DNA from: Fonticula alba ATCC 38817
Lineage: Eukaryota > Protista > Nucleariida
Reading direction: 5' to 3' (one strand)
DNA: 64,000 nucleotides
NCBI GenBank assembly: GCA_000388065.2
Contig: KB932203.1
Positions 38,924 to 62,800 of the stretch are shown here, piece after piece. Every line of letters starts with the position of its first letter. Position 1 is the stretch's first letter. The position numbers and the translations under genes were made by a program. The notes under the pieces were generated by a model, which saw only the letters and a program-made list of their open reading frames with translations, did not search any database and was not told the origin of the DNA.

Positions 38924-40196
38924 GGTACTGTGCGCCCGGCGTGCGGGGGCCGGGATCGAGCGAGGGTGGGCGAAGGGAGATGCAGGGAGGGGGGGGGGGC
39001 GGCTAAAGAGGGACGAGGCGGCAAGAGGGCAAGAAGGAGCACGGAAACGGGCGGAGGGAGGAACGGCGGGGTGACTTGGCCGGGCACCCGAGGCGCGGCA
39101 CCCAGGCCGGGGGCCCAAAAAGCGCCAGCCACGCCACGAGCCGGGGCGGCCGGTGATGGGGGTGCCGGGGGCGGGGCCAGCCGGCCGGAGCCCGGGCGCC
39201 GGCCGGCCCACGCCTCCCTCCCTGGTGGAGGGGAGGACCGGCGGGATCTCGTCTCCACGGTCGGAGGGACGCGATCTGCCCGGGGCTGGGGCCTGGCGCC
39301 GGCGCGCTTCCCTGCAAGGCAGGGCGCACTCCGCCCCCCCCCCCCCCCCCCCCCCCCCGTCGTGGCCCGCGCTCAGGCCAAGGCCAGGCCCTGCGGACCG
39401 ATCGCTGGTGCGTAAACGTCCGGAGGCCCGGAAAAACGGGGATCAGACCGGGCGCGCCCGCGCGATCCACACACCCCCCCCCGCAGCAGTGGCAGCGGCA
39501 ACGGCAACAACAACTCGGCTCCTGGGAGGCCCCCCGCGGGGGTGGAAACGCCCGGATGGGAATGGCGCGGCGCGGCGCGGCGGCTGCCCGAAGAACACCC
39601 AGCGAAGAGAGACGCAGCCGACGGAAACACCCCTGGCCGGGGGCAGGCCGCGGGCCGGCATCGAGCCCGGAGGCCGGCCCGCGAACGCCGAGATGGCGCA
39701 TCCTGGCCGGCCCACTCGAACAGGCCAGGCACCCGGCCGCACGCCCCCTGCCCGCAGCCGCACCCACGAGCGCGCCCGCACGCCCGGCCGCACGCACGCG
39801 CGCGCACACACTCACACACACATGCACACGCTTTTACACTGGCACCATCACCGCCGACCGGGCCCTTTCCCCCCCTCCTCCCTCCGCCAGCCCCGGCCCC
39901 CCCCGCCCGCCGGCGCCCCCCAACGGGGGCAGGACACCGCGAACGAGCGTCTCCACTGACGGAGCACCCCCGATGGCCAAAATCCCTGAGTGCCGAAGGT
40001 ATCCCGTGCCGGTGTCCCAGTTAAGTTGTGTTAATCCCCGGAGGACCATCAATGAAGAGGCCAATAAAAATAACCATTTGTGGCGGGCATTTGCCGCGAC
40101 GGCGTCCCTTTAGCCCCCCCCCCCCCCCCTTCCCCCTTCGCCTTCCTTCCCCGCTCCGGTCCTCGATCTCCCCTCTTTATCTCCTCTCTGGCACTA
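38924..40196. promoter_or_regulatory. Divergent intergenic region between UNC13 (-) and NAGK (+)
   Basis: Inferred from the divergent ATGs at 38923 and 40197; contains a lower-GC island at ~39950-40110. Confidence 0.35.
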
Positions 40197-40459
40197 ATGA
40201 CCGGGCACACCACGGCCCTCGCGCTCGTGGTCGGCGTTGACGGGTGCGTGCGCGTCCACTTGCCCGCTGTCCAGCCCAGCGACTCCCCTTGTGTTCCGCC
40301 CTCTCCTCCCTGACCTTCCGCCCCGATCGCACAGCGGCGCCACCAAGTCCACCCTGACCGTGGGGTTGGCGCGTAACTGCCCCCAGGACCCGGTGCAGGG
40401 CTTCTGCCTGTCCGGGCCAGCGGCCAACATCCATGTGCGCGCATGCTCATGGCGATCCT

Positions 40460-40506
<47 letters not shown>

Positions 40507-42390
40507 GCGCCCTCGCCGTCGGAGCTAATCCTCCTCCTCCCTTTCCGCCTCGCCCCGCCCGGGGCTTGGCGCCTGTGCCCGGGCCCCCGAGCAGATCCGC
40601 GGCGTCGAGGTGGTCGCGCGTGAACTCCACCACACCCTGGCCGCCGGCGTGCGCGGCCTGCTGGAGAGTCCCGGCCTGCGGGAGCACTCGTGCACCTGTC
40701 CGCTGGGCGAGTCTTGCCCATTGTGGCCGGCCGGGCGGGCGGGCACCGAGGCGGGCGGCCCCCCGCGCGCGGTGATCGCATCCCTGGTGGCCTGCCTGAG
40801 TGGCATCCAGTCGGACACCGACGCCGAGGCCCTGCGCCGGTGCCTCCAGCAAAAGGTGTGGTCCGGGGCTGCGTGTGCCCGGCAGCGTCTTTGCGCGCAT
40901 TTGCTCTCCAACGACGGGGGCACCGAGGTGCCGGATGCCGACCTGGCGGGCCTGCTGTCGCTTCAGCCGGGGGCCTTTCTCCCGCCGGCCCACACGCTGA
41001 TCCTGAACGACACGCGTGTCTGCATCACCGGGCAGCATCCCATTTCGGAAGTCGGCGGCGCGGCCCTGTCCGTGTGCCTGGTGGCCGGGACCGGCAGCAA
41101 TTGCACCACCCTGCCGTGGCACCTGGAGCCGCACGAGATCTCCGGTACGCCGCCGGGCGCCGGTCCTTCCCCACAGGGCCGCCGCCCTCCTACGGCCCTT
41201 CGCCCCTGCTGCTGGTCTGACGTCATCTCGCGATCTCTCCCCGGCCGCCCCCCGCCCCCCGCCCCCGCCCCCCGTCTCTGGCTGAGCAGATGCGGCTCGG
41301 TGTCACTGCGATGCTTGCGACCGGGACGCAGCATGCAGCCAGCCCCTGGCCTCGAAGCCGGCCAGTTTCCAACGCGTGTCGGCCGGCGGCTGGGGGCACC
41401 TTCTCGCCGACCATGGAAGCGGTGCGCCTCGCCGTGTTTTTTTTTTGGATGTTGTCCTTCTTCCTCTCTCCCCTTCTGCTCCCTCTCTCCCCTTCCCCCG
41501 CGTCCCCTGGGCATCCGCCCGACCGACCCCTCTTTCGCTCACTCGCTCGCTCGCTCGCCCGTCCGTCCACCCGCCCGCCCGCCCGCCCGCCCGCCCGCCC
41601 GCCCCACGGCCACCAGGCTATGCATGCGCTCTTCTCTGCTTGCAGAACATTTTCTTGGCCCTGGACCATGTGCCACTGCAACTGGACTCGTACGCCCCCG
41701 AGGCCGGCCCGGAGGAGCTCGGCAACCCGGCCGCCGCGGCCGTGGCCCTCGGCCTGATGGCCGATCACTTTCAGGTGCGTCAGCTCACGTCCCCCCCCCC
41801 CCCTGCCTCTGTCTCTCGGTCTCGGCTGTCCCCCTCGCTACGCCCACGCGCGCGACTTACCGCCGCCCTGTCAACGGCAGATCCCGGCGGATGTGCGCGC
41901 CAGCGGCACCTCGGCCATCCAAAGCTGGATGGTGCAGAACATCTACACCGCCGGGTCCGACTCCAAGAGCTTCATCGCCGGCTTCGCGCTGCAAGTGGCC
42001 CACGGCGCCGCCACCCTCAAGGACCCCTTCTGCCGGGCGCACCTGCACCATGCGGGCTGGTGGCTGGGACGGCTGTTGCGATCGGTCATTCAACGCTCGC
42101 TCCCGGGCCCGGGCCCGGAGCTGCCGTGCGGCGTGTCGGTGGCCTGCATCGGGTCGCTGTTCAATGCCTTCGAGGCGGGACTGGGCGAGGGCCTGCTGCT
42201 TGGCCTGCGGGCCGGTCGGCAACTTGTCGGCATTGTCATGCGCGTCACCTGCCACCAGGCAAAGGGGGAGTTTGCTGGCGCGCTTGCGGCGTCGGCCTTT
42301 GCGCTGGAGCTGGTGCTGGGGCCGGGCGGGCCGGGTGTTCCGGGCCGGGTGCCGGCCTCCATACTGCTCACCCGGCGGGTTCCCCTCTGA
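40197..42390 (+). CDS. NAGK: N-acetyl-D-glucosamine kinase (BadF/BadG/BcrA/BcrD ASKHA family)
   Basis: Spliced product has VGVDG|GATKST, SGPAANIH, ACLSG, LILND, CLVAGTGSNC, SAGGWGHLLADHGSGY, SKSFIAGFALQVAHGA..KDPFCR..AGWWLGR and VACIGSLF. It has three micro-exons at the 5' end and TGA at 42390. Confidence 0.86.
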
Positions 42391-42969
42391 GGCCCGAGAG
42401 AAGGGCCTCCGGGGTGGGCCCTGGCCCGGGGCGGCCCGGGCAGGACCGGCAGAACCCCAGCCGCAGGCAATCAACAAGCCTCCCCTGTCCACCCGGGCGC
42501 GCCTGCGCCGGTGCCTGTCTCCCCGACCTGCCCCGGCCCGGGGGCTGCCCCTTCCTGCTCTCGGTCGGCCAAATGCAAGCAAAAGAGCAACCCCAAATCC
42601 GGCCACTTTCTCAGAAGTCTATATTCGTTTTTTCCATAATTGTGGCCTCCNNNNNNNNNNNNNNNNNNNNNNNNNNNNNNNNNNNNNNNNNNNNNNNNNN
42701 NNNNNNNNNNGGGGGGGGGGGGGGGGGGGGGGGGGCGGCGAGAGGGAGGGAGAAGGGAGGCGATCGCCAGGGATCCCTCCCTGGCGGTCTGTCTAGTATG
42801 TGCCCCGTGCCCTCTTGGGCGGCTGCGCCGGCCGTCTTGCCTGGCCTCCGCACTCTTGCTCATCTCTGCTGTCCTGCCTCTCGCTCTCTCTCGCCCTCCC
42901 TCGTGGCACTTTCGCGCACTGGCGAGAGAAAAGAACCCAGAGGGAGGGGGACGGAGAGGCACTCATGTC

Positions 42970-45900
42970 TCAAGAGCGCTTGGCCACGCGAACGTGCAGC
43001 ACCAGCATCACCTGCGTACCGAGGAGCTTCTCGATACGAGCCGAGGCATTTTGCACCATGGCGCGGTGGATGGTGCCATTCCGGCCGACGATTTTGGCCC
43101 GGTGGGCTTCGCGCGGGACCGTCAGCACATGGTCAATGCGCAGGAATCCCTTGAGCGGGGTCCAGCCGACGGTGGCCTGCTGCGCTTCCCAGGGGATCTC
43201 CTCATGGGTGTACTCCAGGAGCTGCTGGCGGATGATCTCATTGATGCGGGTCTCGATGCTCAGATCGGTCGAGGCGTCCGCGCTATATTCCCACGGGCCG
43301 GGCCGGGCACGCTTCATGAGGAACCTCTGCACGTACGACGAGCATGCACACGCGTGTGTGTGTGTGTGTGTGTGTGTGAGTGTGGGCGATCGAAGAGAAA
43401 GCAAAGGAGAAAAGAAGAAAGAGCAGCCCCAAGTTGCAATCAGCCAGCCAACCAGCCAGCCAACCAGCCAGCCAGCCAGAAAAGAAACAGGGCACAGGCA
43501 GAGGGGGGCACACACGCACCACCAACGGGTCCAGGCCACGCTGCTTGGCCGCCGAGATCATGAAGAACCCGTGCAAATTCAGGTCCTCACTCAGGTTGAC
43601 GTTCAGCTGGCCACGCAGCATGTCGGCCACGCGCGGGTCCGAATGGAGCGGCGCCTCCGGCCGGTCGATCCGGTGCAAAGGCGACCTCTCCAGCATGACC
43701 AGGCGCAGGTCCGACCGCTCGTGGGCGTCCCACTCGTCGGACTTCAGCGGCTCAATGCCCTGCTTCTCCAGCGTCTCATTGGACAGACGCTCGGCCATGC
43801 GCTCCAACTCGTTGAGCTCCGCCTCATCGGAGTCCTCGGCGTCGGAGGCCGCATCGCCAGGGGCGGCTGCCGCGGCCGCCAGCGACTTCAGGGCCTCTTC
43901 CTGGTCGAAGTCCAGGGAATTCAGCAAATCCTGCAGCGACTGGCCCCCCGGGGCATCCAGCAACTCCACCTGCTCGGCCATGCTGACCAGCAGCCGTGGA
44001 TCCGGGTACATGACCTCCGGCAGGCGCTGCCGCAGGAAGGCCCGATTGGCCCGGCGTACGGCCGGCGTGGCATCCGGATCGAAGTACTCCTCGTCGGAGT
44101 CCAGGCCATCCGACAGGTCGCTCTCCTCGTCGTCCTCCTCCTCCGGCTCCTTGTCGGAGTCGGAGTCGCTGGACCGCCCGCCGGCCTCCAGGTCGTCGAA
44201 CAGCTGCGCGGCCTCGAGCTCCGCACGCTCATCCGCCCGCATCAGCGCCTCGAAGGCCGGCAGCCCGACAAGCAGATCCGGCTCCGGCACAAAGTACGGC
44301 GACAGGTAGGGCTCCGGCACATTGGCCAGGTGCATGGTCGCCTCGGGTGTGGCGGTCGAATCGAGCCGCACCAGGGCCCAGTGCCGGTTGAGGGCCACGC
44401 GGAAGTAGTTCACCAGAATGGCCCGCAAGTACTGGCGGAAGGTCGAGCACCGGGGGTTGTTCGGCTGCAGGAAGTCCACCACATCGATGTCATCCTGCAG
44501 CTCCAGGCGCTGGATCTCCAGCAGGATCTGGTCCAGCAGGGCCAATTCCTCCGGCACCGAGGGATCCAGGCGCAGGTACTCCAGCTGTGCGGGCGAGGCC
44601 TCGCGCAGGAAGCGCCGCAGCCCGGCCGCCGTGCTGGCGCACAGGAGTTCCGGCCGCGGCTGGAACTGGTTGTCCGGACACATCAGGGCATTCAGCAGGG
44701 CCAGCGACCCGAAGAGCGGCGGGTTGGCCGGCTGCTGAGTCAGGTATTCCGTCGGCAGGAGCCGGGCCACGAAGGCCGGCAGGTCGCTCGGGACCAGGTC
44801 ATCCTGGGGGAAGTCCCGCCAGTTTTGGTGCAGGAGCTCCGTGCGCCGGCGCGCATCGGCCACCGAGGGGAAGGGCCCGAAGACGCGGTTGAGCTCCTCG
44901 GCCGACAGCTCGGACAGCGGCCGCGTGGGGTCGAGGGGGTCCGACTCGCCGGACCCCAGCGGCGGCGCCGGCGGCGGAGGCGCGTGCGGCGTCTTCAGGT
45001 CAAAGCTCTTGGGCCGGATATTGGCGAAGATCGAGCCATAGAACTCGGCCAGACTGCTCATGTCCTTGTTGGAGGAGGCGATATCGGTCTGTGGCGGGGG
45101 GGGGTCGGGGGCGGGGGGAGGGGAGGCGTGAGTACAGGGGCACCCACAGGAGGGCCATGGGCAGAGGTGTCAGCAGAGGAGGCGATGCCGTGAGGCCGGC
45201 CCGGTGGGTGTGCACCTTGTTGAAGACGATGAGCTTTTCCACATTGGAGGGATGCGCGGCCAGACGCTTGGCGATGTCCACGTCATTGGTCTGGTGGCTC
45301 TTGGAACAGTCGATCATCAGTACAACCAGATCCACGTCATCCAAGACCTTCCAGGCCTTCTCGATAGTAGGAAGGTTGCTCCTACAATGAGAGTCAAGAG
45401 TGGGCGAGCGGGTGGGCCGGCGGGAGGGTGAGCGGGGGNNNNNNNNNNNNNNNNNNNNNNNNNNNNNNNNNNNNNNNNNNNNNNNNNNNNNNNNNNNNNN
45501 NNNNNNNNNNNNNNGGGGGGGGGGGAAGGGGAGGAAAGAGGGGGGCGAAGGGAAGGCAAAAAGAGGGCCAAGGGCAGGAGGATGGGAGCGCTCTCAAATA
45601 AGGACCACCGGCAAAAGGGAGTGCAGCAACAACAAACAACGAGTACGGAACAGGAGAGAGGGAGGAAGAGGGAGGAGGAGGGAGGAGGAGGGAGGAAGGG
45701 AGAGAGAGAGAGAGAGAGAGAGAGAGCAAACGCACTTGCGCGCAACCTTGGTCGACAGAATGCCCGGGGTGTCGACGAAAACGATCTGCACATTCTCGCG
45801 CGTCAGGATGCCGAGGGTGTTGGTGCGCGTGGTGTTGGCCTTGCGCGAGGAAATGGACACCTCGCCACCGATCAGGGCATTCAGCAGGGTGGACTTGCCG

Positions 45901-46862
45901 GAGTTCGGCGTGCCGATGATGGCCACGCGGATGACCCGCGGCTCCTTCACCTGGGAGGCGGCCTTCTCCCGGGCCTCGGTGGTGGCCTGGTACTGGAGGT
46001 TCACCTGCTCCGCGTCGAAGTCCTTCAGCGGGTGCTTGATCGGGTCGGTCTGGGTCAGGCGCGTCAGCTGGGCCCAGTCCTCGTTCTCCGAGTCGGTGCC
46101 AGCCACGAAGTCCTCCTCGGCGGCGGCGGCGGCGGCCGCGTCGGCCGGGGCGGTGCCGGCGACCGCCGCGGCCTTGGCACCCGTCGAGAGGAGGTGCTCC
46201 GTCGGCGACACGGGCCCCAGCCGCGGGCTGGTCACCTCCAGTGGCAGGGGGTCAATCGAGATGGCCGAGTCGCGGAGCTGGAACTCCGGGTCATAGAGCA
46301 GCGTCGAGGAGTTGGCCACGGAGCGGCTCAGGCGCGGGATGTAGCCCTTGGCCGGGGTGGGCTGGGTGCGCTCGGGCAGCGGGTACTCCGACAGCCGACC
46401 TGGCGTGCCAGGGCCGCCCAGGGCGCCTGGCGCGCCGGCCTGCAGCGACCGGAGCAGACGTTCATTGTGCGACAGCGGCCGATCGGGCAGCGGCTCCGGC
46501 GCCACGAAAGACGCGAACTCCTGCCCGGCCCCGGCGAGAGCCTGCGGCCGGGGCAGGACCGGCATGCTTGGCGGGGGGGACGCCGGCATGCCTGGCGGGG
46601 GGGACGCCGGCAGGCCTGGCGAGGGGGGTGCCGGGGCTGGCGGGGTGGCCGCAGGCGCCGGGGCACTGGCCGGGGTGCCGGCGCCCTGGGCCAGGCGCAG
46701 CTGGTCCAGCATCTGGGCCCGGCGATTGACCGAGTAGTGTCGGCGCGGGGCCGGGCGCTCTAGCAGGACATCCAACAGCGGAATGGCCGGCGCCCGGGGG
46801 CCCGAGCCGTGGCCTGGCAGCAGGTGGCCCGGCACCCGGCGAACCAATGACCAGCGGAGCAT
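42970..46862 (-). CDS. ERAL1: GTPase Era, mitochondrial (ERAL1-like), ~1072 aa with a very large G4-G5 insertion
   Basis: Exons 46862-45736, 45381-45216, 45088-43520, 43326-42970 join in frame (3219 nt). G1 [10 protein letters not shown]2 KANTTR, G3 DTPG, G4 FNK|TD and G5 FFMISA. After these come GPWEY and a type II KH domain ([30 protein letters not shown]). Confidence 0.94.
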
Positions 46863-47673: not shown

Positions 47674-50600
47674 CTACTTGGCGGCCGAGGGGCCGCCGGC
47701 TCCCGATCCATTGCGGGCTGGGGTATTGTCGGGTGTGGCCGTTGGCGCGGCCGGTGCCGGTGCCGGTGCCGCCCCGGAGGATGTGCCCCCGGCAGCCGAG
47801 CTGGCCGGGGTGCTGCCCTCCGAGGCGGACTTGTCGGCGGGGGAGGGCTTTTCGCTGGCCGTCGAGGACTTGTCACTGGCCGCGGGCCGATCGGCGCCGG
47901 GCTTGTCACTTGAGGCGTGCCCGCCGCCGCCGCCACCGCCGCGGCTGCCACCCGGGCCGCCGGTCGAGGCGCCGGACCCACTGGCCCCCTGCTGCCGGGG
48001 GAGGCTATCGCGCGAGGCGTTGATGACATCCATGACGGCCTGCGAGCCGGGCGAGCTGGGCGCCTCGAAGGGGTCCTGCCCGGGGAGGTTCAGCACGAAG
48101 ACCTGGGAGATGGACTTGAACTTCTCGTCGCTCTCATCGTCATCATCGAAGAGGACCAAGTAGTCGTTGCCGGCGCGCCGGAGCGAGGGCGGCTGCACGA
48201 CAGTGGCCTCGTAGAAGCATGTGGTGCCGGGATACAGGCAGAGGACCTTCTTGAACCGGGGGAACTCATGCGGGACGTAGTTTGTGGCGTTCTGCCGGGA
48301 GCGGGGCGGGGGGCGGGGGGGGGGGGGGGAGGGAGAGAAGGAGGAGGAGAGAAAAGCATGTGTGTACGTGCGTGTGTATGTGAGAGAGGGAGGGAGAGAG
48401 CACCGGCCAGGGCGCCACTGGCAGGCGAGGAAACACCAGCGGAGCAATGGCAAAGGGGCGTACCTCCTTCGGCGGCTCGGGCAGACTCTTCGGCAGGGGG
48501 ATGATCATGTCCGAATTGAGGGTATACCGCTTGGGGGGCTCCTGCTCGTCCTCGTTCTCGGCGTCGGTCACCTCGTACCGCGTGCGGGACAGGCGCCTTC
48601 GCCGGGCAGCCGCGCGACCAAGGGCATGTTAGCCGAGCAGCGACAGGGGAGGCGGGCGGGCAGCGAGCAAACAAAGGTCCATCCACCAAACGGACACCCA
48701 CGCACCGTGACACCTCGGCCAGGATCCACTCCTGAGTCTTGGCCTTGCCCTTGCCGGTCAGTGCGGCCACAAAGTCCCCAGGGGCAAAGACGGCCCCGGG
48801 CTCGGCCGGAGTCGGCCCGCACAGGGGCGGCGGGTTCTTGCCCTTGTAGATGCTGACATTCTTCTTCTGCGGGTGGATGGGTCCCCCGCCCCCGCACCCC
48901 CGATCAAGGTAGGCCGAGAGTCAGACACACGCATCCAGGAGGCCACCCGGCCCGAGGCCACGGAGGGCCGGGAAAGGGCCGGCGCAAGAGGAGGCCACAC
49001 AAGCAAATGGCCCCGGGCCGCTCCCCCCCCCCCTCCCCCACCTCCCACAACCGGGCCGGCCCTGCAGGTTGCCATGCTACGTACCACGCGCTCCTCGATG
49101 GGGGACTCGAACTTGGGGCGCTTGCGGGGGTGGTCGGCCGACCCGTCCAGCCGACTGGCCGAGTCGTCGCGGCGCGAATGGCCATCGGCTTCGCGCTTGG
49201 CGTCGGAGCCGGCCCGCGAGCCGCCCGGCCGGCCGCCCCCGGCTCCGCCGCCCGGGCTGTCGATGGCCGGGGAGCTGCCCCGGCCGCCGCGCGAGGCCGA
49301 TGGCGAATCGCGCGATGACCGGCTCCCGGCGTTGGCCACCGCCAGCGACCCATGCGAGGAGGAGCCGGACGCGCTGCCGGGCCCGCCGCCGGAGCCGGGC
49401 CCGCCGCCGGAACGCCCGGACCCGGACCCATCACGGTGCGACCCATGCCGCGAGCTGCCACCGGGCCCGGCGCCACCATCGGCCGAGGCCCCACCCCGGC
49501 CGGCCCGGCTGCTGGAGCCCGACCCGGCCGTGATGCCAGGCGACTGATGGGACCCGCCGCCGGACATGGCCGAGTGCGAGCCCCCGGGCCCGGTGCCGCC
49601 GCGGTAGTCCGACCGGCCATCCTCCGGGCCGGCCCCCTCCGAGGTCACATCCACCAGCAGGTCCCCGGAGGGGGAGCTTTCCACATAGGGGATGGCAATT
49701 TCCGGGGTGTAGGTGTCCTCCAGGGTGGTGGCCGCGCGGGTCATGCGCCCGACGGCGCGCTGGAAAAACTGGTTCAGCAGCAGGACCTGGTGCTCCTGGT
49801 TGGTCTTCAGAGGCAGCAGGTGCGTCAGGCTCCGGTAAATGTCATGCAGCAGGGCGTCACACTTGTCCGGGCCCAGCTCCGCGTGGTTCCGGCAAAAGTA
49901 CAGGATCTTGTCGTGCGTCACGGCCGACAAATCGGCCGAGAGCTCTTCCAACTCGCGGATCTGCAACACGCGCGCAAGGGGAAGGGCCGGGGGCGGGCAA
50001 ATGGCGGTCAGAGGGTCGGTCGCCCGGCCGGGTCAGCCAAGGGGAAGGAACAGGCCGTGGGTCGGGGAGGACCGGGCCACAGGGGGCGCCGGGGCGCCGG
50101 GGCACCGGAGCACCGGGCGGGGCCAGAGAGGGGGAGGGGCGAAAGGGAACATACATTGGTCAGGCGCTTGCGCCACTCCTGGGCCAGGTGCTCGGCCGTG
50201 TCCAGGAACATGTCCAGCTCGCGCATGGCCTTAAAGTCGTCGGGGGCCGCAGTCGAGCCGGCCGCCGCGGCGGCGGCGGCGGTGGCGGTGGTGGCGATGG
50301 CGGTGGCGGTGGCCGGCCCGGCGGCGGGGGGCCCGGTCACGGTCGACGGGGCGGCCGATGCCGCGGCCGCCGACGAAGCCGTCGCCGCAGTCGCGGCCGG
50401 CGTCGACTGCGCTGCACCGCCCCCGCGGGACGCCTGGCTGGCAGCCTTGCCTTGAGAGGCCCCGCTGGCGGACTTGGCACCCGGTTTGTTGGCGGACTTG
50501 CCCGACCCGCCACCGGAGGAGCCGCTGCCCTTCGAGGAGGAGGAGGAGGAGGAGGAGCCCCCGGAGCCGGACGAGGAGGACCCCTGTCGCGCTGAGGCGC

Positions 50601-50745
50601 CGGAGCCCCCGACCGGGGGGGTGCCGGTGCGCACGGCCGTGGCGCGTCGCGACGTGGCGGCCGGCCGCGCCGAACCGCCCTTGCCGGATGCCTGCGCCGG
50701 GGGGGCCGGCGCCGAGGAGGCCGACGGCGGGCCGCCTGCCGACAT
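47674..50745 (-). CDS. SGF29: SGF29 tandem-Tudor protein with an ING-like N-terminal coiled coil (~792 aa)
   Basis: Exons 50745-50155, 49960-49085, 48866-48706, 48596-48464, 48291-47674 join in frame. Tudor motifs PPPLCG..PGDFVAA..EWILAEV, RYEVTD, RYTLNSDMIIPLP and VLCLYPGTTCFYEA..DYLVLFDD match SGF29. An acceptor-like ccaag precedes the ATG, so a 5' exon is possible. Confidence 0.9.
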
Positions 50746-50785
50746 GGTCACTTGGGGGGGGGAGGAGAGAGGAGCAGGGGAGGAA

Positions 50786-50818
<33 letters not shown>

Positions 50819-51497
50819 TCGGCCGGGGAAAGGGCGTGCAGCAGGGGGAGATGTGGGGACACGGAGGCAGATGCGCTGCCCTCGACGCGGGCCCTCTCCC
50901 CGGGGGTGGGGGCATTTTCAGCGGGGATCAGCCCGCTAGTGTGTATCCCCCCCTCTGCCCGGGGAGCAAACACGACCGGGGGCCTCGGGGGTCTCACGGT
51001 GTGTGGTGCGCGGCCGCGCCCGGCCGGGCGACTGGCTCCGGGGGATCGACACCCCGGTGTCTCCGTTGGCATGTGGGCATCGCCGGTTGTGGGTGCGATG
51101 TCGGCCACTGCCGCCAGAGGTGTGTGCGAGGGGGCGGGGGTCTGGGGNNNNNNNNNNNNNNNNNNNNNNNNNNNNNNNNNNNNNNNNNNNNNNNNNNNNN
51201 NNNNNNNNNNNNNNNNNNNNNNNNNNNNNNNNNNNNNNNNNNNNNNNNNNNNNNNNNNNNNNNNNNNNNNNNNNNNNNNNNNNNNNNNNNNNNNNNNNNN
51301 NNNNNNNNNNNNNNNNNNNNNNNNNNNNNNNNNNNNNNNNNNNNNNNNNNNNNNNNNNNNNNNNNNNNNNNNNNNNNNNNNNNNNNNNNNNNNNNNNNNN
51401 NNNNNNNNNNNNNNNNNNNNNNNNNNNNNNNNNNNNNNNNNNNNNNNNNNNNNNNNNNNNNNNNNNNNNNNNNNNNNNNNNNNNNNNNNNNNNNNNN

Positions 51498-51530
<33 letters not shown>

Positions 51531-51554
51531 TGCGCGTGCATCTCCCTCCTCAAG
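50746..51554. promoter_or_regulatory. Putative bidirectional promoter between SGF29 (-) and NC2beta (+); partly an N gap
   Basis: Head-to-head arrangement with about 0.8 kb or less between the coding starts. The first NC2beta exon is unresolved (N gap 51148-51497). Confidence 0.45.
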
Positions 51555-52156
51555 CCACAATCTCGAAGATGGTACAGGAGATGCTGCCCGACGATGTGAC
51601 CTGCGCGCGCGACGCCTATGACGTCCTGATGTCCTGCTGCATCGGTGCGTGCCCCCTTGCTTTCGCCTCCCTCCTCCCCCCTGCCCTCTCCCCCGCGCAC
51701 ATGCATCGATGCCTGCCCGCCTGACACGCCGACCCATGCACACGCGCGTCGGCAGAGTTTGTTCACCTCCTGGCGGCCGAGGCCAATGAGATCTGCGAGG
51801 CCGAGCAGAAGCGCACAATCCTGCCGGAGCACATTGTTGCGGCGCTCAAGCGCCTGGAATTCGGCGAGGAGTTCCTGAAGCCCGTGGAGGAGGCCTTCCC
51901 CGAACACAAGAAGGACGCCAAGGAGCGGGTGCGTGTCCCTTGGCCCGCCTCTCTTCTTTTTTTTTCGCCCCCCCCCCCTCGCTTCCTCGGCCATGCATCT
52001 GCCCGGACAACGCCCGCTCGCTCACCCGCACGCACAACGCCCCTGCACCAGACAACCGAGCGGCGCAACCAGCGCGAGAAAAGCGTCGTCACCGATGAGA
52101 TGCTCCGGCAGCAGCAGGCGCTGCTGGACAAGGCCCGCGAGAAGTTCTTCAATTAG
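51555..52156 (+). CDS. DR1: Negative cofactor 2 beta / Dr1 (histone-fold TBP regulator), first exon unresolved
   Basis: Exons 51555-51644, 51756-51928, 52052-52156 (TAG): ATISKMVQEMLPDDVTCARDAYDVLMSCCI|EFVHLLAAEANEICEAEQKRTILPEHIVAALKRLEF..MLRQQQALLDKAR. These are classic NC2beta H2B-like fold motifs. Confidence 0.93.
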
Positions 52157-52435: not shown

Positions 52436-55400
52436 CTACAGGTCATCCGGCCGGAGGGCCAGCCCTGGCAGGCGGTCCGCCACGCAGACCACCCGCCGGC
52501 GGTCGGTCGACGTTAGCAGCACCGCCCCGCGAGCCGGGACCAGCGCCACATGCGCCGGGGCCTGGTCCTCGAGGCCGGGACCGAACAGAGCCCCCCCCGT
52601 GCCGAGAGGCCACTCATGGCGGATGGCCGCCGGCAGGCGAGCAACCCCGGCCAGGGGAGAGGGCTCCAGTTGCGGGTGGTCCAGCAGGTGCAGGTCCAGC
52701 AGCGCAAAATGGCGCCCGGGCCCGGGCGGCCCATCGGCCACCAGCACCAGGCACATGGTCGGATCGACCAGCGTCAGGTCCAGGATGGCGGCCCAACGCC
52801 GCGGCATATCCAGCACCAAGTGCAGACCGGCCACACAGGGGATGGGCCCGCGGCTGGCATCCGGCCCGGGCCCCGGGCCCCGGTGGACCCGGCCACAGGT
52901 GGCCACGCAAACCAAGTGCACCCGACCGGGCTGGGCAAAGGCCCCGCCATTGCTCGCCGGCTGGGGCTGCTCAATGGCCGGGTGCAGGTGCAGGTGGTGC
53001 TCGGCCGGGGTGCCGGCCTCGGGCGGATCGCCTGGCGCCCGACACCGGAGCCGGGGCTCGAACACCGGCGGCAGGGCCCCCTCCAGCAGGAAGCCCGCTC
53101 CCGGGCGGACCCCCGCCCCGGGGCCCAGGACCAGCCCCTCGGCCGGACTGGATGGCAGGAGGCTGGCCCCCAGGCCGGGGTCAGGGCCGCGGGGCGCCTG
53201 CCGCCAGGCCCCACTGGCCCGGAGGTGGAAGTCCGCCTGCAAGTGGGACAGCTGCTCGCGCAGGGCCAGCAACCCCGATGCCAGGCTGCCTCGGGCAGAT
53301 GCGGCGAGGATGCCGGCCAGGCCCGGGACCGGGCGCCCGGCAACCGGCCCCGGCCCGGCGATGAAGAACCCGAAGTACTCGTCGAAGCGGCAGTCGGCCC
53401 CGCGCACGGCCATGCCGCCGGGGTGGACCGGCCCCTGGGCCGGCCGGCCGACAAACAGCCGCTCGATGGTGGCCGTCAGCTGGGCCTGGGAGAAGGCCTC
53501 GCCCGAGGAGGCCGAGGGGTCGGCCGAGCGGGCGGCCGCCGCGGCTGCCGCCGCCGCCGCCGCCGCCCGCGCACCCTTCTCCCGGGCCGGCCCGGCGTCG
53601 GCATCCTCGTCGTCGCTGGCGCCATCGGTGGCCGCCTCATGCAGGGCCGCGTCGATGCCCTGCAGCCAGGCGAAGAAGTGCACCAGCTGCTCGGTGTGCG
53701 ACTCGACGGCCACCCGGCAGTGCTCGAACTGCGACATCAGCTCCGCCGTGGTGCTGATCATCCGGCGCAGGGTGGGCTCCGAAAGGGCGAGCCCCGGGCC
53801 GGCCGCCGAGCCGGGCCCCGGGGCCGACAGCGGCAGCAGCAGCTCCAGCTCGATGAGCAGCGCGCGCAGCGAGGGGAGCGTGAAGTCCGAGATGATGTTC
53901 AAGATGCTCTGGCTGGCGAAGCGCAGCAGGCGCACGAGCTTCCGCCGGCGCTGTGCATTTCCCCGCGCGCCAGGGGGAGAGGCAGAGACGGAAAGCGCCA
54001 GGCGGCGAGGGAGCGAGGGAGGGAGGGAGGGAGAATGGAGCAGCCCGGCAGGACGGCGCGCCACCCCGGACAGGGGTCAGCCACATGTGGACCGGCAGGG
54101 CCGGCGATACAGCGAAGAAGGAGGGGCAAAATGAATGAGGCAGGGGCCAGAGGGAGGGGGCAAAAAAAAAAAAAGGCCCACAAAATGCCTCCGGGCTGGC
54201 GCACCTCCGCATGGTACGACGAGGACAGGAGGTCCGCCACATAGCCCGGCGTCAGGCCGGTGGACAGGGCACTCAGCAGGGACAGCCGGATGCGGCTCAG
54301 CAGGCGCTGCTCCGGGTCGCCGGCAGCCTCCCCGGCCGGGTCCTCGGCGTCCTCATCCGCCGGCATGGCGGCGGTGGCGGCCCGCGAGAAGCCCAGCAGC
54401 TCGGCCTGCACGCAGGACCAGGCATGCCGGCTCCGGGCATAGGTGGTGGCCGCCCAATTGAGCAGGACCTCCGCCCGGCGGGTGTACACGCTGAGCTCCT
54501 TCAGCAGCGGTCGCGCATGATGCAAGTCCCCCGAGAGGAAGGCGAAGGCCTCGGCCGGCTGGGGCCCCGGCCGCAGGCACAGCACGCTGGCCAGCGGCCC
54601 GCCCGTGGCCGACCAGGACAGGCAGGCCGACGTGCCGGCCGCCATGGCATCGGTGCCCGGCGCCGCCGCGCCCGGGGGAGGGATGTCGGGCCCGGTGGCC
54701 GGCACGCCGGTCAACCGGGCCGGCCCGGCCGCCGCCCCGAAGAACATCCCCAGGCTCAGGGCATTGGGCCAGAACACCGAGAAGGCCGGAGTCCGGCCAG
54801 CGGCCCGGTCAGCCGGCCCATCCAAACATGCCAGCACCACATCCGGCGAGGTGGCCGGCTCGGCGGCCGCCCGGCCCACCAGCCTGGGCAGCTCCGGCGG
54901 CGACACCGCCAAAAACCCGGCCGGCAGGTCCGACGACTGGAGCTCCAACGCGTCGAGCGGCGCCGGCCGCGGGGGCGGGCACAGGCTGCGCGCAAATTCC
55001 TCCTTGAGCGACTGGCCATCGGTCGGGCGGTCAGTGCCGGGGCATCACTTGTCTTTGGACTTGGCACCGGCCGGTGCTCGACCCCCCCCCCCGGGCCGGC
55101 TGGCCGGCACGCGCGCCGACGCGAGCCCACACCGAAGCCGCAGCGACAGGCGAACGTACCGTCATGCGGCCGCTACCCATGTCAGGCGGCGGGATCTTGG
55201 CCAGCGAGTCGTGACGGCGCCCCCCCGGCATGCAGCGCTCCGCAGGATGCCGCGACGCCAGGAGAATGGCCGCGTCCGCGCTGAGGGACACGGCGAAGCG
55301 CGCCCCACAGGCGAACGACAGGAGGCAGGCGCGCGGGGCCGTCAGCCAGGCAACCGAGCAGGGGAGGCATGCGCCATCGCCAGGCTGCGTGACATCCACC

Positions 55401-55804
55401 GCCGGAGATGCCGGGCCCTCCGACAAAGACCCCACCATCGCCAGCAGGTCCTCCGGCCGGAGGGCCCACACCAGGTCCCCGGAGTGCACGGAAAACAGGA
55501 CCACCAGACGGAGCCCGGCGCTGGACTTGGGGCTGCTGCTGCTGCTGCTGCTGCGGCTGTCACCGCTGCCAGGGCGCAGAAACAGCGGCCCGTGCCCGCC
55601 GCCAGCCGCCGGCGCCCGGAGGTCAAAGCATGCCAGGGCCAGCTCGTCATCCGGACTGATGTCCAGCCGGGTGGGGCTCGGCAACAGCGACAGGCCGCCC
55701 CGGTGGCCTGACACCTCAGCCGCCAGCCCCGGCGCCAGGTGCCGGCGCCAGTAGCCCGAGGTGAGGAGCACATCGCGCAGGGCGCTGCTTGCGGCCTGTG
55801 CCAT
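52436..55804 (-). CDS. ANAPC4: Anaphase-promoting complex subunit 4 (APC4)-like, divergent
   Basis: Exons approx 55804-55161, ~55012-54205, ~53950-52436. It has a WD-like start (RLDISPDDELALAC). The helical region LLNWAATTYARSRHAW..LSALSTG..SILNIISDFTLPSLRALLIEL..HFFAWL parallels APC4 LLQYINLSLTCMCEAW..SIQKLVISHLQSGSESLLYHL..AFFRWL as recalled. The C-terminal RGAVLLTSTDRRRV resembles RKVSCVLSSNLRHV. Confidence 0.65.
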
Positions 55805-56441
55805 GCTCACAAGATGGGGAGGGGGGTGCGTCAGAAGAGCGGCACCGGGCGGGGGCAGGAACAAAAAGATGGATGTGTAAGGGCGGGCGGCGGAGGCGCG
55901 GACATGAGGAGAGGAAGTGCCCGGGCCCCTCGGCGGGGAGTGTCCCGCGCACGCGTCCTGAAAAAAAACAAACAAATAAGCGCCAGGCACACCGCACACA
56001 CCGGCACCGAAAGGCCCCTCCCCCCCCCCCCGCACCGGCCGAAGAAGTATGCGCGAGCTCGCCGGCCGAGCAATCCCGCCGGCATCGGGCCGCGGGAAGC
56101 GATGCCAATTGCCAACGCATTCGGGCGCCCGGGATCCAGGGCGCGAGAGTGCGCGCGGCGGTCCCGGCGCCCGGTTCCTGACCCTCCCCTGAAACGCATA
56201 GACACACACACAGACACACACACACACACACAGGCACACACAGGCGGGCGTCACCGCCCTGTGGCCCTGTCTCTGCCAGCAGGTACATGCCCCATACAAA
56301 TGACATAGGTATATTGGTGAATGTGCCCACGGGCCCGGGCCTTCGTTCCGCGCCCAGCAGGCGAAGGACGGCAGGCAGGGAAGATGAACATCAACAGGGA
56401 GCCGGTGACACACCGGCACCATCAAAGGTGCGGCCCTTCCC

Positions 56442-59400
56442 CTAGGCCAGGGACGGGCCGCCGAAGCTCTCCTCGAACAGGCGCTGCGAGAGACGCATGT
56501 ACTTCTCGACCTCCTGAAAGACCACCGCCAAGAGAGGACCCGAAGAAGTGGCGGCACCAGCGCGCATGTGCGACCGGAAGTGGCAAGGCCCCCCCGGGGG
56601 ACGAGAGTGTCAGTCACGGAGGGGCGAGGGCAGGGGAAAAGAAAAAGGCACGAGGACAAAGGGGGGGGGGGGGAATGGCACGAACCGCTGGCTCCGAATC
56701 ACTGAGCGGCACGAAGCGCTCCTTGGTGCCGGACGGGTAGGCCGACAGGGGCGAGGTGGCCGCGGCCGGGCTGGCATCCGGCACACCGGACAACGAGGAC
56801 GCCGGCGGCGGGATGGCCGACCGGCTGGTGGTCGACGACCGCGACGACCGCCGGAACAGCCCGCCGTCGGAGGCCGACGTGGAGGCGGCCGCGGGGGCGG
56901 CCGACTCGGCGTGGATGTGCACCGAGCTGGCCGACGGGGTGACCGCGGCCGAGCGCTTGCCGGTGGCCACGCTGGAAACCACATTGGCCAGCGAGGTGGG
57001 CACATAGTAGATCATCAGGCCGCTCTGGTGCAGGAAGGACCCGGCATCGCGCCGCGCCGGGGAGCCGAGCATCGGCGCCGGGCTGGCAGGGGCCGAGGCC
57101 GCCGCGACCGCCGCCCCGGCGCCCTGCTTCGGCGGGGCCACCAGCACCCAGTCGACCAGGCGATCGAAGGTGACAAACCACTTGACCGAGGGCCCGCGCG
57201 CGTCCACATACAGGATGCCCTGGCGCGCGAAGTACAGGCTGGCCGACTCGCGGCGGATGTCCAGATGGTTGATGTAGTCCCAGGTGAAGAACTGCGANNN
57301 NNNNNNNNNNNNNNNNNNNNNNNNNNNNNNNNNNNNNNNNNNNNNNNNNNNNNNNNNNNNNNNNNNNNNNNNNNNNNNNNNNNNNNNNNNNNNNNNNNNN
57401 NNNNNNNNNNNNNNNNNNNNNNNNAAGGCGCCAGGACGGCAGCGACAGCATCAGATAAGCATGCTCCTTGGGCATATGGCGGGCGGGCCGAGGGGGAGGA
57501 AAAAGAAAAGAAGAAGAAAGAACGCACCTGGCCCTCATCGATGGTGGTCAGCAGGTGATTGCCGAAGGAATGGTGGGGGTAGTACGGCCGGAGGATGCGG
57601 TCCGGGCCGATGTAGCGCGGGATGCGAACATGCTCCGCCACGACGACCGAGCCGCTGACATCATTGCGGATGCCACTGGCGACTGCGGGCCCGCGGAGAA
57701 CGGAAAAGAGGAAGAAGACAGCCGCATCGGGAGGCCGGCCGCCACACAGGGCAAGGGAATAGCACAAAGCACCGAAAATAAAAAAAAAAAGAGGTCAGAC
57801 ATCAGGCACAGAGACAGAAACGGAGAGAGGGCGAGCAAAGGAAGCGGCGGCGGGACAAAGGCGACGCGAAAGAAACACCCCAAGGGCAGGGCACGACGCA
57901 CTGATGGCCGCGCCATCCAGCAGGCCAACCACCGGCTTGGTCACGGCGCCGGCCACGCCCTTGCCCACGCCGGAGAGGAAGCCCTTGAGGCCCTCCTCCT
58001 TGGCCCCATCCAGGGGCTTGGTCACCACCCCGGTCAGGGCGCTGCCGAGCCCACGCGCGAAGGTGGTCAGCCCGGTGCGCGTGGACTTGACGGTGCCCTG
58101 GCTGCGGGCGGCGATGCGCGTCACCTCGCGATCCTGCTGGAAGCGACTGTCGAAGGTCACCTCGGCCACGCCCTTGCTCAGGGAGCTGGTGATCTTGGTG
58201 GCGCTGTCCAGCACGCCGGACCCGGTGGACCGGAGCAGGGACGAAGTGCCGGCCGCCGCGCCCAGCAGGAACTCCTTCGACCCGCGGGTCAGGCCCTGGG
58301 CCGGCTCATAGAAGAAGTCCTGCACACCGGAGGACAGGCTGTTGAAGAGGCCCACCGGGTTGCCGAGCATGTCAATCGACCCGACCAGCATCAGCAACTG
58401 GCGCATCACCTGCGTGGCATAGTGCCGGGTCACCAGCGACACAAAGAGGCTGTCGGCCGCCGCGAAGTTCGACACCTCCAGCGAATTCAGCCGGATCGGC
58501 GCCCGGTCAATGCTCCCGAGGGACATGGACAGCAGGTCCACCACCGAGCTCAGGAACCCGAAGACCAGGGCGCCCTGCATGACCGACCGCTGGGGAGCAT
58601 CATCGGCCGCCGGGACAATGGCATCCCCGGCGCCGGCACCCGTGGAGCCGATGCCGCCATCGGGGCCGCCCTCGCCGCCGCCGGCGGCCGAGCCACCGGC
58701 CCCGCCCTCGGCCGCACCCTCGGCCAAGCCGTCCGGATTCCGGGACCGCATGAGCGTCAGGTTGATCTGGATCGGCTGGATCTCGAACACCCCGAAGTAG
58801 AGCCGCGTCGAGGCCGACCGGTGAACCGTCTGCGGCCGGGGCAGGCGCGGATCCACCGGACCGAAGGCGCCATGCAGGGTGGCCAGGCCGGGCTCCTCCA
58901 GAGCCGGCGGCCGGATCGCGGCCCCGGTCGGCAGCACCGCAAAGTGCCCCTCCTCCGGCTGCGGGCCGCCGCCCGGGCGAGGGCCCGGCACCGGCGCGCC
59001 CACCTGCAGCCGAGCAGAGGAACTCCCACTCGAGGGAAGCACACTGAAAACGAAGTCCAACATGCGCATCAGGAACACCTCGCTGCAATTGAGCTCGCAC
59101 TCCTGCAGCAGGACACTCAGGGACTTGGCCACGAAGACATGCGCCTCGGGTTGCTTGACAATCAGCGTCGACAGGTAGAGCAGGGGCTTGGCGGAGGACG
59201 CGTCGCCGGCCGTGATGACGGCCCCGGGCTCGGCCTCGGCCACCGACCCGGCCGATGACCCGGAATCACCGGCACGCTGCTTGGTGATGGTCGAGTGGAA
59301 GACCACCGGGAAGAGGGACCCGCGACTGGTGTCATCGATTTGCATCTGGCCAACGGTCAGGTCGATGGCCTGCGACAGGGAGGAGTCCGAGAACTGCAGC

Positions 59401-59845
59401 TTCAGGTCCTGCACCGTCAGGTACATGATCTCCCGCGGCACGGCATTGACAATGCTCAGGCCGATGCCCTTGAGGTTGACGGCCAGGTTGAAGGAGAAGG
59501 CAGAGCTGAGGGAGGCCAACTCGGTGTCCTCGTCCGAACCGTCGGCCCCGCCGGCCGAGGGGGGCTGTGCCAGCGAATCCGACGAGCCGGTCCGGGCGAG
59601 ATCGCCCGCATCCGGGGTCGTCGGAGACGTGGCCTCGGGCGTCGTACCGGCGGCCCAGCCGTGCAGGCGCTTGATGAGCACCCCGCGCGGGCGGAGGGCC
59701 GCAATCGGGGCCATGATCTTGGCCCGCGCCGGCCGGACGTCACTGCAAGGGGAGAAGGTGATCGGGCGGGCGGGCGGGCGGGCGGGCGGGAGGGAGGTGT
59801 GCCAGACACAGGCAAATACACCCGGGGGGGGAGGGGGGAAAAAAC

Positions 59846-59876
<31 letters not shown>

Positions 59877-62800
59877 GGCGAAGGAGGAACATGTCAGTAC
59901 ACGCCGGCACAAGGGGAAGGCAGCAGACAGCCATGTCGCCGCCGGGGCCATTGGAGCGTGGAGAGGGCGACCCACAGCCACAGGCACGCACTGATCACGG
60001 ATGGTCACCACGGTGGCCGTGGACTTGATGTCCACGGTGACCAGGACATAGCGCCGCGTCTGGGCCCCGGACTCGCGACTGGTCACCGTGATGGGAACCG
60101 GCTTGCGCCGGCCGATGACACGCAAATCCAACGGCAGCGACGCCGGCGGGATGGCGCACTCCGGCGAGTACATGGTCGAGCGCAGGGCATTCACCGCGTC
60201 GCCGGCATACAGCTTGACCAGGCGCTTCTCCGACAGCGGGGTGTCCCACAGGAAGGGAACCACCTGCGAGGCCGCGGCGAAGTAGTGCCCGGCCACGGGG
60301 TTGCTGTCGGTCAGGTAGCTCTCCATGCGGTAGCCGGTGTCCGGCTCGGCGGCCACCCCGGTGGCCGAGGCGCACTCCCCCTGCACCAGGGCCATGTGGT
60401 ACGAGGAGAGATTCACCAAACGGAAGGGGGCCTCACTGCGGAAGGGGAACACCCGCACAAAGAGAACCGCCCCTTCGAGGGACACGTCCACCCGCACAAC
60501 CGACACCTGCCCCTGCGGCGAGAAGATCCGCACGAAGGACTCGCCGACATTGTTGGCCGAGAAGCCGGCCGACCAGCGCCGGAATCCGTCCATCAGCTCG
60601 ATCGACTGGCGCAGGGACAGGTTCAGGTCCTGGCCCTGCTGGAAGTGGAAGGCCGACGACTTGCCCGGGAGGATGGTGGTGATGCCCTCGTCCTGCTGCG
60701 GAGGCGCGCGGCATGCCATGGCCGTCGCACGTCCAAAGCCAAGGGGGCACCGGCCAGGGCAGGGCGAGGCGAGATGGCGAGGAAGGGGGGGGGGAAAAGC
60801 ACCAGCCAGTCAGAGGGGGCCCCCGGAAGGGAAGGGAAAGGAGAGCGGCAGGCAGAACAGCGGGACAAAGCACGGTCGAGACCCGGGGAAAGGGGCCAGC
60901 CAAAAGCACAAGCAGGGGCAAGGGGGCGGGGNNNNNNNNNNNNNNNNNNNNNNNNNNNNNNGGGGGGGGGGGGGGCACAAGGGAGGGGACGTACGGTCGA
61001 ACGGCCGGCCGAGGGGGCAGTCGTCGACTTCCGCAGGAAGGTCGACTTGCCCGTGCCCGCCTCGAAGTGGCGGAAGTCCAGCGACACATTGGTGTGGTTG
61101 ACCAGGATGTAACGCGGCTTGAGGGTGATCACCTTGACCGACCGCAGTGAGGCGGCCACCTGCTGGTCGAGGGTGGACTCGGCCCCGGCCCCGGCCAGGC
61201 GGATCTCGCTGGCCAGCTGCCAGGCCTTGGTGGACTTGCCAGCCCCGAGCAGGGTGACTTCGCCCTCGGACCCGACGGCCGCCGTGTTGAAGGGCTGGAT
61301 GTGGCGGGGTCACGGAGGACAGGCGGTTAGTCATCGAACCCGGTGCCCAAGGAGCCGGGCCATGCCGGGGGGGGGGGGATCCCATGCGCAGGGCATTCGC
61401 GTCCCCTGCAAAAGGGGGAAAAAAAAAAGACGAAAAAAGGGCAGGAGCATAACCAACGCACGCTGGACCACTGGGACTCGTGCACCCGCAGCGACGTCAG
61501 GGACTTCATGCTGCTGGTGACGTAGAGCGTCATCGGGCAGGATTGCGACCCGTCGACGCTGTTGAAGGTAGACAGCATCGTGAGGGCCGTGTCCTCCAGA
61601 GGGGTGGCATCACCGACGCCGATGGTGCTGGCGCTCATGCGGTTGGCATTGCGCACTTGCAGATCGAGGCCCGTCTTGTTGACGATGAGATACGGCGAGA
61701 AGATGGTCAGCGCCCGGGGCAGAGGATGCGACCCGGGGCCGGACACCAGCCGCCGGTGGGCCACCCGCAGCCCCAGCGGGTCCGGGCAGTTGTCCGTGAA
61801 CAGGTCGATGGTCCCCTCGCCGGCGCCGGCCCCCATGGAGGGGTCCAGGATGCGCAGGGCCTCACGCGAGCAGAAGGTGGCCGCCGGGCTGCGCCGATGC
61901 GACCCCAGCTGCGGCAGCGACAGCCCCATGTACACCCGCCCGGTCACCGGCACATCGAACACCTCGCACCGGCTGCACGGGTCCAGGGTCCGAGAGAAGC
62001 CATTGACACTGTCGAAGGCCCGACGCTCGGTCTCCAGGCCGAAGGCCACCGGCGTCGGCAGGACATTCTCCAACACCAGCGGCGCAAACAGCCGCAGGTT
62101 CACCCGGCGCCCGGCGCCGGAGGAAGCAAAGCAGGCAGCCAGATGGAACACCGAGCGCGACCCATTGACCGGGTTGCACTCGAGCACGCCCCCGGACCAG
62201 GACGGCGCCCTCAGCAATTGCCCCGGCACCCCGGACAGGTCCAGCGCCTGGCAGAAGTCGAAGACATCGGAGATGGCCGATCCGGACCCGAGGGACACCG
62301 AATGCGGCACCGGCCGCACCGCCAGGGCCCCATGCGGGAAGCAGGTCACCGGCAGGGCCAGCGTCCCGCCATGCGGCTGGACAACATGCCCGGCTGGCGG
62401 ACCCCCGGCCGACCCGGCATCGGCCTTGGCCCCGGCCGGCAGGAAGACCACCTCCAGCGGCACGCTGGTGGCATTTTCCAACACCAGCGGCGACCGGAAA
62501 TGCACCACCTTCAGGCCATCCACCACATTGATGTCCACCACCATGGGCACCCGGCGGAAGGTGGCCCCAGACCCGGACCCGGCCGTGCCGCCGGCGAGCC
62601 CACCAACACCGGCCACCACGGTGGAAGCCAGATGCGTCAGCCCGGCCAGCGGGGCGGCCCGAGTGGACCCGCGCGTCGGGGTCGACGGCGACTCGGCCAC
62701 CGGCGAAGCGGCCACCGAGCCCGAGGAATCGCCAACCGCCTGGCGCAGGGCCAACAACCGCGAACCGACCGTGGCCATGGAGAAGGAGGAAGCCGGCAGC

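Follow-up and report, generated by a model that had tools for sequence, protein, structure and literature searches.

Here we describe a gene of the nucleariid protist Fonticula alba ATCC 38817, located on the minus strand of a 64,000-nucleotide stretch of contig KB932203.1 (assembly GCA_000388065.2), referred to below as the window. The gene encodes a predicted block of N-terminal helices followed by a pair of Tudor domains of the SGF29 type. SGF29 serves SAGA and related complexes as the reader of H3K4me2/3 in their Gcn5-Ada2-Ada3-Sgf29 acetyltransferase module. We conclude, with a probability of roughly 80%, that the gene is the SGF29 orthologue of F. alba with an ING-like docking helix at its N-terminus, and not a one-off chimera that rewires MYST or histone deacetylase (HDAC) complexes, as had been suggested in a preliminary description made from the DNA letters. 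On the SGF29 side, the score with the SGF29_Tudor profile (PF07039) lies above its cut-off and the H3K4me2/3 half-cage is kept; on the ING side, the score with the ING profile (PF12998) lies below its cut-off and a PHD finger was not found.

An SGF29 tandem Tudor and no PHD finger

The Pfam searches covered 24736 models at an expectation value (E) of up to 10. With PF07039, exon 5 scored 55.5 bits and exon 4 scored 28.2 bits, both above the cut-off of 23.8, and the two matches covered positions 72-132 and 32-68 of the profile, respectively. Exon 3 (E 8e-7) and exon 5 (E 2e-7) also matched the crystallized chains of human SGF29 (3LX7, 3MEW, 3ME9, and 3MEA), and the closest clusters in the ESM Atlas were SGF29 clusters, with scores of 0.95, 0.93, and 0.92. 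In human SGF29 the methyl-lysine half-cage is formed by Y238, Y245, F264, and D266 (PMC4589357). HMMER alignment to 3MEW and 3ME9 placed Y607, Y614, F635, and D637 of the Fonticula protein (nt 48234-48142) identically on these four residues; the 7/19/2 spacing of the cage residues is found in the human SGF29 sequence as well. The two barrels of SGF29 separately accommodate H3A1 and H3K4me3 (PMC7764450), and Tudor 1 of the Fonticula protein retains its acidic stretch, RYEVTDAENED. The complete SGF29 tandem Tudor named in the preliminary description was thus recovered from the PF07039 matches, the human chains, and the retained cage, and H3K4me2/3 reading by this Tudor pair is a well-supported prediction from sequence.

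The same description had pointed out that the protein has no PHD finger, and the searches agree. Across all 792 aa there are 5 Cys, 15 His, and zero CxxC motifs, and in the Pfam search no PHD or other zinc-finger model matched any exon. The basic KRPK motif that it listed is also there, as RKRPK at aa 476-480 (nt 49126-49112), right before the Tudor pair. The length of the protein results from three compositionally simple tracts that inflate it, at aa 1-165 (A/S/G/T/P), aa 291-470 (G/S), and aa 666-792 (S/A/G/P). The portion that looks folded amounts to only ∼110 aa for the helical block and ∼170 aa for the Tudor pair.

Helices and Tudor pair on one mRNA

Transcript evidence was taken from Logan contigs assembled from 4 RNA runs of 2012, which contained 61-65% of the words sampled from the locus. 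The RNA contigs leave out exactly the segments 50154-49961, 49084-48867, ∼48705-48597, and 48463-48292, and RNA depth was 11-18 over the exons compared to 0.8-6 over the introns, i.e., 5- to 15-fold lower in the latter. A single RNA contig of 2311 nt covers 50659 to 47656, crossing every junction and containing nearly the whole coding sequence. Since the RNA contigs cross all four junctions, the helical N-terminal part and the Tudor part are on one mRNA. This bears out the in-frame splicing of the helices to the Tudor pair that had been proposed from the open reading frames: there are five exons, the frame stays open, and RNA contigs run through all junctions. The joint 49085/48866, at which a split of the transcript into two would have been expected to appear, was present in 4 of the 4 runs and is spliced within one mRNA. 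No additional exons of the gene were seen, the RNA contig coverage ending near 50773 and 47635.

One further joint, 47792/49391, was found in 2 runs and would skip 1598 nt. It was rejected as a real splice: its ends are CA..CC, its anchor is 20 nt long, and it lies in Gly/Ser-coding repeats. It is most likely an assembly artefact induced by these repeats.

A sub-threshold ING signature in the first N-terminal helix

The helical block (aa ∼166-290) stands ahead of the Tudor pair, where the coiled coil of SGF29 would be. Because intron 1 splits this domain inside its most conserved motif, the 47-aa helix that spans the junction (aa 177-223) was tested in joined form. PF12998, for which the gathering cut-off is 23.9 bits, was the only Pfam family that it matched (E 0.023, 15.7 bits). 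Residues 1-43 of the peptide fell on positions 2-44 of the profile, which is the register of the ING4 control and the one that the preliminary description had proposed, and the reversed peptide gave no ING match. The control was a 26-aa ING4 fragment that had been quoted there and proved to be exactly residues 6-31 of 4AFL. It matched PF12998 with an E of 1e-8 over profile positions 2-27 and, in the phmmer search set, retrieved the N-terminal domains of ING5 and ING3 from the PDB.

The preliminary description had also aligned the block to ING4 without gaps over ∼100 aa. This was examined with the three ING4 fragments chosen there, held at fixed spacing and scored with BLOSUM62 against 20000 shuffles. 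In the proposed register, which extends over 102 aa, the score was +58 (39, 13, and 6 for the three fragments) with 15 identities in 61 positions. The shuffles gave a mean of -48 and an SD of 17, and thus a z of 6.2; the per-fragment p values were <5e-5, 0.006, and 0.024. All other registers, plus and minus 7 included, scored ≤ -9. Over the 127378 positions of the six-frame translation of the window, the highest score reached was 17. The proposed register was therefore the best one and its score is beyond chance as a pairwise comparison, but its fragments were chosen beforehand and it is not significant database-wide, so that we take the alignment as supporting, not decisive. Taken together, these data suggest that an ING-type signature in the first helix is real but sub-threshold, weak but specific. 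On this signature, the N-terminal docking helix may be a divergent member of the docking-domain type found at the N-termini of ING proteins.

A second occurrence of the same combination came from the ESM Atlas. One SGF29 cluster, with a 327-aa representative and 56 members whose commonest phylum is Chlorophyta, carries PF07039 in 100% and PF12998 in 86%. The PF12998 matches presumably lie on the N-termini of these proteins, because the Tudor pair occupies the C-terminal part. With the signature seen in two very distant lineages, a trait of the family is simpler than two independent fusions, and the ING-like signature probably belongs to SGF29 N-termini in general, as opposed to a lineage-specific fusion. 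We note that other SGF29 clusters carry a different annotation. In a diatom-rich cluster (312-aa representative, 203 members), PF13867 (SAP30_Sin3_bdg) is present in 85%, and in an ascomycete cluster it is present in 12%. These PF13867 matches may be cross-hits that fall ahead of the Tudor pair.

Searches started from a single piece of the protein gave little else. Against the PDB, phmmer with the helical part of exon 2 returned TOM20 alone (E 0.27), and its four matches among representative proteins were to junk proteins full of internal repeats, none of which has a Pfam domain of relevance. Word-indexed homologue searches were empty for the helical piece, for the Tudor 1 region, and for the Tudor 2 region. 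The Tudor 2 peptide, used to scan for relatives, also found none, and the 22-mer spanning the junction of exons 1 and 2 was absent from the metagenome contigs searched. Feature matches of the helical piece in the ESM Atlas scored ≤0.52, belonged to unrelated bacterial clusters, and were set aside. A single-sequence AF2 model of aa 198-297 contained two long helices, at aa 199-245 and 252-276, with low confidence (mean predicted local distance difference test score of 59.5). Its fold matches (for example bS20 and TetR_C, from Foldseek against AFDB Swiss-Prot and from the Atlas shape search) are those of generic helices and were discarded as meaningless.

Alternative explanations for the N-terminal block

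Several results weigh against an ING-like docking helix and speak for an alternative in which the resemblance is due to chance or to convergence of amphipathic helices. The N-terminus would then be an ordinary, fast-evolving SGF29 coiled coil, and the assignment of the gene as an SGF29 orthologue would be unchanged. At 15.7 bits the joined helix misses the 23.9-bit cut-off, so that by Pfam's own rule it is not an ING domain, and the match concerns the first helix only. At E ≤ 10, PF12998 did not match exon 1, exon 2, or the trimmed pieces, including the second half of the block (aa 198-292). Neither the pieces nor the joined helix retrieved an ING chain by phmmer at E ≤ 10 from the PDB, which contains the N-terminal domains of ING3, ING4, and ING5. 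With the exon 2 part as query, phmmer found no relative of the N-terminal block among 1.84 billion representative proteins. Only unrelated proteins came up when the helical piece was searched by embedding and by fold, and by a Karlin-Altschul estimate the pairwise score with ING4 loses significance after database-wide correction. Of the N-terminal ING domain announced in the preliminary description, an ING-type signature and the register are supported, but the status as a domain is not. Against chance, however, ING is the sole Pfam family matched, in a register predicted beforehand and with the reversed sequence unmatched; three separate fragments are all positive in one gapless register over 102 aa; and an independent algal SGF29 cluster shows PF12998 in most of its members. 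We therefore regard chance or convergence as an unlikely source of the resemblance, albeit the strongest competitor of an ING-like docking helix on an SGF29 orthologue.

A true ING-SGF29 chimera, as first proposed, would use an ING domain to recruit the Tudor reader to MYST complexes of the NuA4/NuA3/HBO1 type or to Sin3-HDAC, or would bridge these to Gcn5. The signature does lie in the helix through which ING proteins assemble into their complexes, and with no PHD finger the Tudor pair would be the sole reader. However, the match to ING is weak and partial, and the architecture is canonical: SGF29 normally consists of a coiled coil of ∼100 aa and then a tandem Tudor (PMC10630320), which leaves little that is unusual in the supposed reader swap. 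Nor is the combination uncatalogued, given its annotation across a whole chlorophyte SGF29 cluster of normal protein length, which favors a family trait over a new fusion. As for coupling to MYST or HDAC complexes, nothing tested points to MYST or to Sin3/HDAC, and the default partner of the SGF29 N-terminus is Ada3 (PMC7528701). We consider a chimera of this kind very unlikely. It is more improbable still, to the point of being nearly negligible, that a helical protein and a separate SGF29 encoded by adjacent genes were wrongly joined in the gene model. The long low-complexity linker between the folded parts would suit such an error and nothing else would; single RNA contigs run through all four junctions in the 4 runs, the introns are markedly shallower than the exons, and the frame is open across every junction.

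Gene structure and neighborhood

The coordinates of the gene are collected in Table 1. The coding sequence is 2379 nt long, with the frame open over all junctions, and yields the 792-aa product; G+C is ∼70% over 50745..47674. All four introns are of the GT..AG type, and their 5′ ends begin with GTATGT, GTACGT, GTGCGT, and GTACGC. This provides an RNA-backed and corrected SGF29 gene model for a poorly sampled lineage.

Table 1. Features of the F. alba SGF29 gene (positions in the window)
Feature	Position	Strand	Details
Whole gene	50745..47674	minus	5 exons, 4 introns; ATG at 50745
Exon 1 (aa 1-197)	50155..50745	minus	Low-complexity head aa 1-165; ING-like helix begins, aa 177-197
Intron 1	49961..50154	minus	194 nt, GT..AG; joint 49960/50155 in 4/4 RNA runs
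Exon 2 (aa 198-489)	49085..49960	minus	Helical domain continued; linker rich in Gly/Ser, aa 291-470; RKRPK motif
Intron 2	48867..49084	minus	218 nt, GT..AG; joint 48866/49085 in 4/4 RNA runs
Exon 3	48706..48866	minus	Tudor 1 start (PPPLCG ... WILAEV); human SGF29 chain 3LX7, E 8e-7
Intron 3	48597..48705	minus	109 nt, GT..AG; RNA joint 48595/48705, cut ambiguous by 1 nt
Exon 4	48464..48596	minus	Tudor 1 remainder (RYEVTD ... IIPLP); PF07039 E 2e-6, profile 32-68
Intron 4	48292..48463	minus	172 nt, GT..AG; RNA contigs go straight from 48464 to 48291
Exon 5	47674..48291	minus	Tudor 2, cage residues, tail aa 666-792; PF07039 E 8e-15; TAG stop 47676-47674
ING-like helical block (aa 177-278)	49718..50217	minus	Split by intron 1; sub-threshold PF12998 match on aa 177-223

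Upstream of the gene, ∼400 nt from its start, the assembly has a gap (a run of N at 51148-51497) with CA/GT microsatellites on both sides, because of which the assembly lacks part of the promoter region that separates SGF29 from the next gene; there are ten other N runs in the window. Head-to-head with SGF29 over this gap lies a fragment of a histone-fold exon (51542-51646, plus strand) that resembles NF-YB/Dr1 and matches PF00808 (CBFD_NFYB_HMF) with an E of 0.0025 and 18.5 bits. Farther upstream, a 974-aa open reading frame at 57798-60719 (minus strand) contains a VPS13 adaptor-binding (VAB) domain (E 5e-12). Open frames with high G+C at third codon positions share the minus strand from 52439 to 63804, which suggests that one very large VPS13 gene fills the upstream 12 kb.

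On the other side of SGF29, an open reading frame at 45597-46862 (minus strand) encodes a GTPase G-domain (PF01926, MMR_HSR1; E 4e-17) and fits the Era-like gene noted at 43560-45088. An expressed gene of six exons occupies 40130-42601 on the plus strand, with an RNA depth of ∼45-58 and a product of ∼520 aa. For three of its introns a GT..AG joint is recorded, and the remaining two show up as contiguous pieces in single RNA contigs. The product opens with a motif of the type GVDGGATKS, reminiscent of BadF/GlcNAc-kinase-type sugar kinases; the largest exon of the gene had no Pfam match.

Comparison with SGF29, ING, and algal proteins

SGF29 forms the histone acetyltransferase (HAT) module with Gcn5, Ada2, and Ada3, and an Ada3 C-terminal mutant is probably unable to bind SGF29 (PMC7528701, PMC10226619). 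For the Fonticula orthologue we propose that the C-terminal Tudor pair would bind the H3 N-terminus carrying K4me2/3, while the N-terminal helices, to judge from other species, would dock the protein onto Ada3 in this module. Docking would tether Gcn5 to promoters marked with H3K4me3 and would favor processive acetylation of H3, as in yeast and human SGF29.

A broader and more tentative proposal, to which we would give somewhat less than even odds, is that the N-terminal docking domains of SGF29 and ING are homologous across eukaryotes. A literature search found no paper linking the SGF29 N-terminus with ING. If the proposal is true, the subunits that read H3K4me3 in acetyltransferase modules of the Gcn5 and MYST types would come from one adaptor in which the docking module was kept and the reader exchanged (tandem Tudor versus PHD), and the Fonticula protein and the chlorophyte cluster would be two distant lineages that still show the common signature. 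It would also give a common origin to the subunit logic of two major HAT families, both of which combine a helical docking domain with a reader of H3K4me3 and bundle these with a scaffold subunit beside the catalytic subunit. In practical terms, the Sgf29-Ada3 interface, for which there is as yet no solved structure, could then be modelled with the solved Yng2/ING-Eaf6-Epl1 bundles as a guide.

Compared with human SGF29 (also called CCDC101) and yeast Sgf29, the Fonticula protein has the same tandem Tudor with the same Y/Y/F/D cage and the PPPLCG and WILAEV motifs. These are preceded by an N-terminal region of ∼100 aa, predicted to be helical, and a linker, and there are no further domains. 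The human protein has its coiled coil at residues 3-98 and its Tudors at 160-212 and 232-286 (PMC10630320). The Fonticula protein differs in its length, 792 aa against ∼260-330 aa, owing to the low-complexity tracts, and in N-terminal helices that have no detectable sequence relatives and a sub-threshold match to PF12998.

The likeness to the ING N-terminal domain (PF12998; ING4 4AFL, ING5 5ME8, ING3 8COK) consists of the placement of aa 177-223 on profile positions 2-44 and of the gapless alignment to ING4 residues 6-107. The helix breaks of the Fonticula block, GPDK and PLKTNQ, coincide with what we take to be the loop and the kink of ING4. The differences are that in the Fonticula protein Leu-Ala stands in place of the Leu-Pro conserved in the ING motif, that the second half of the block is unrecognized by the profile and the first half remains below its cut-off (15.7 < 23.9 bits), and that no PHD finger follows. 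The chlorophyte SGF29 cluster shares with the Fonticula protein the combination of SGF29_Tudor and PF12998, which in the algae is known from family annotation, not alignment. It differs in that green algae belong to another supergroup and in that its members have the ordinary length of SGF29.

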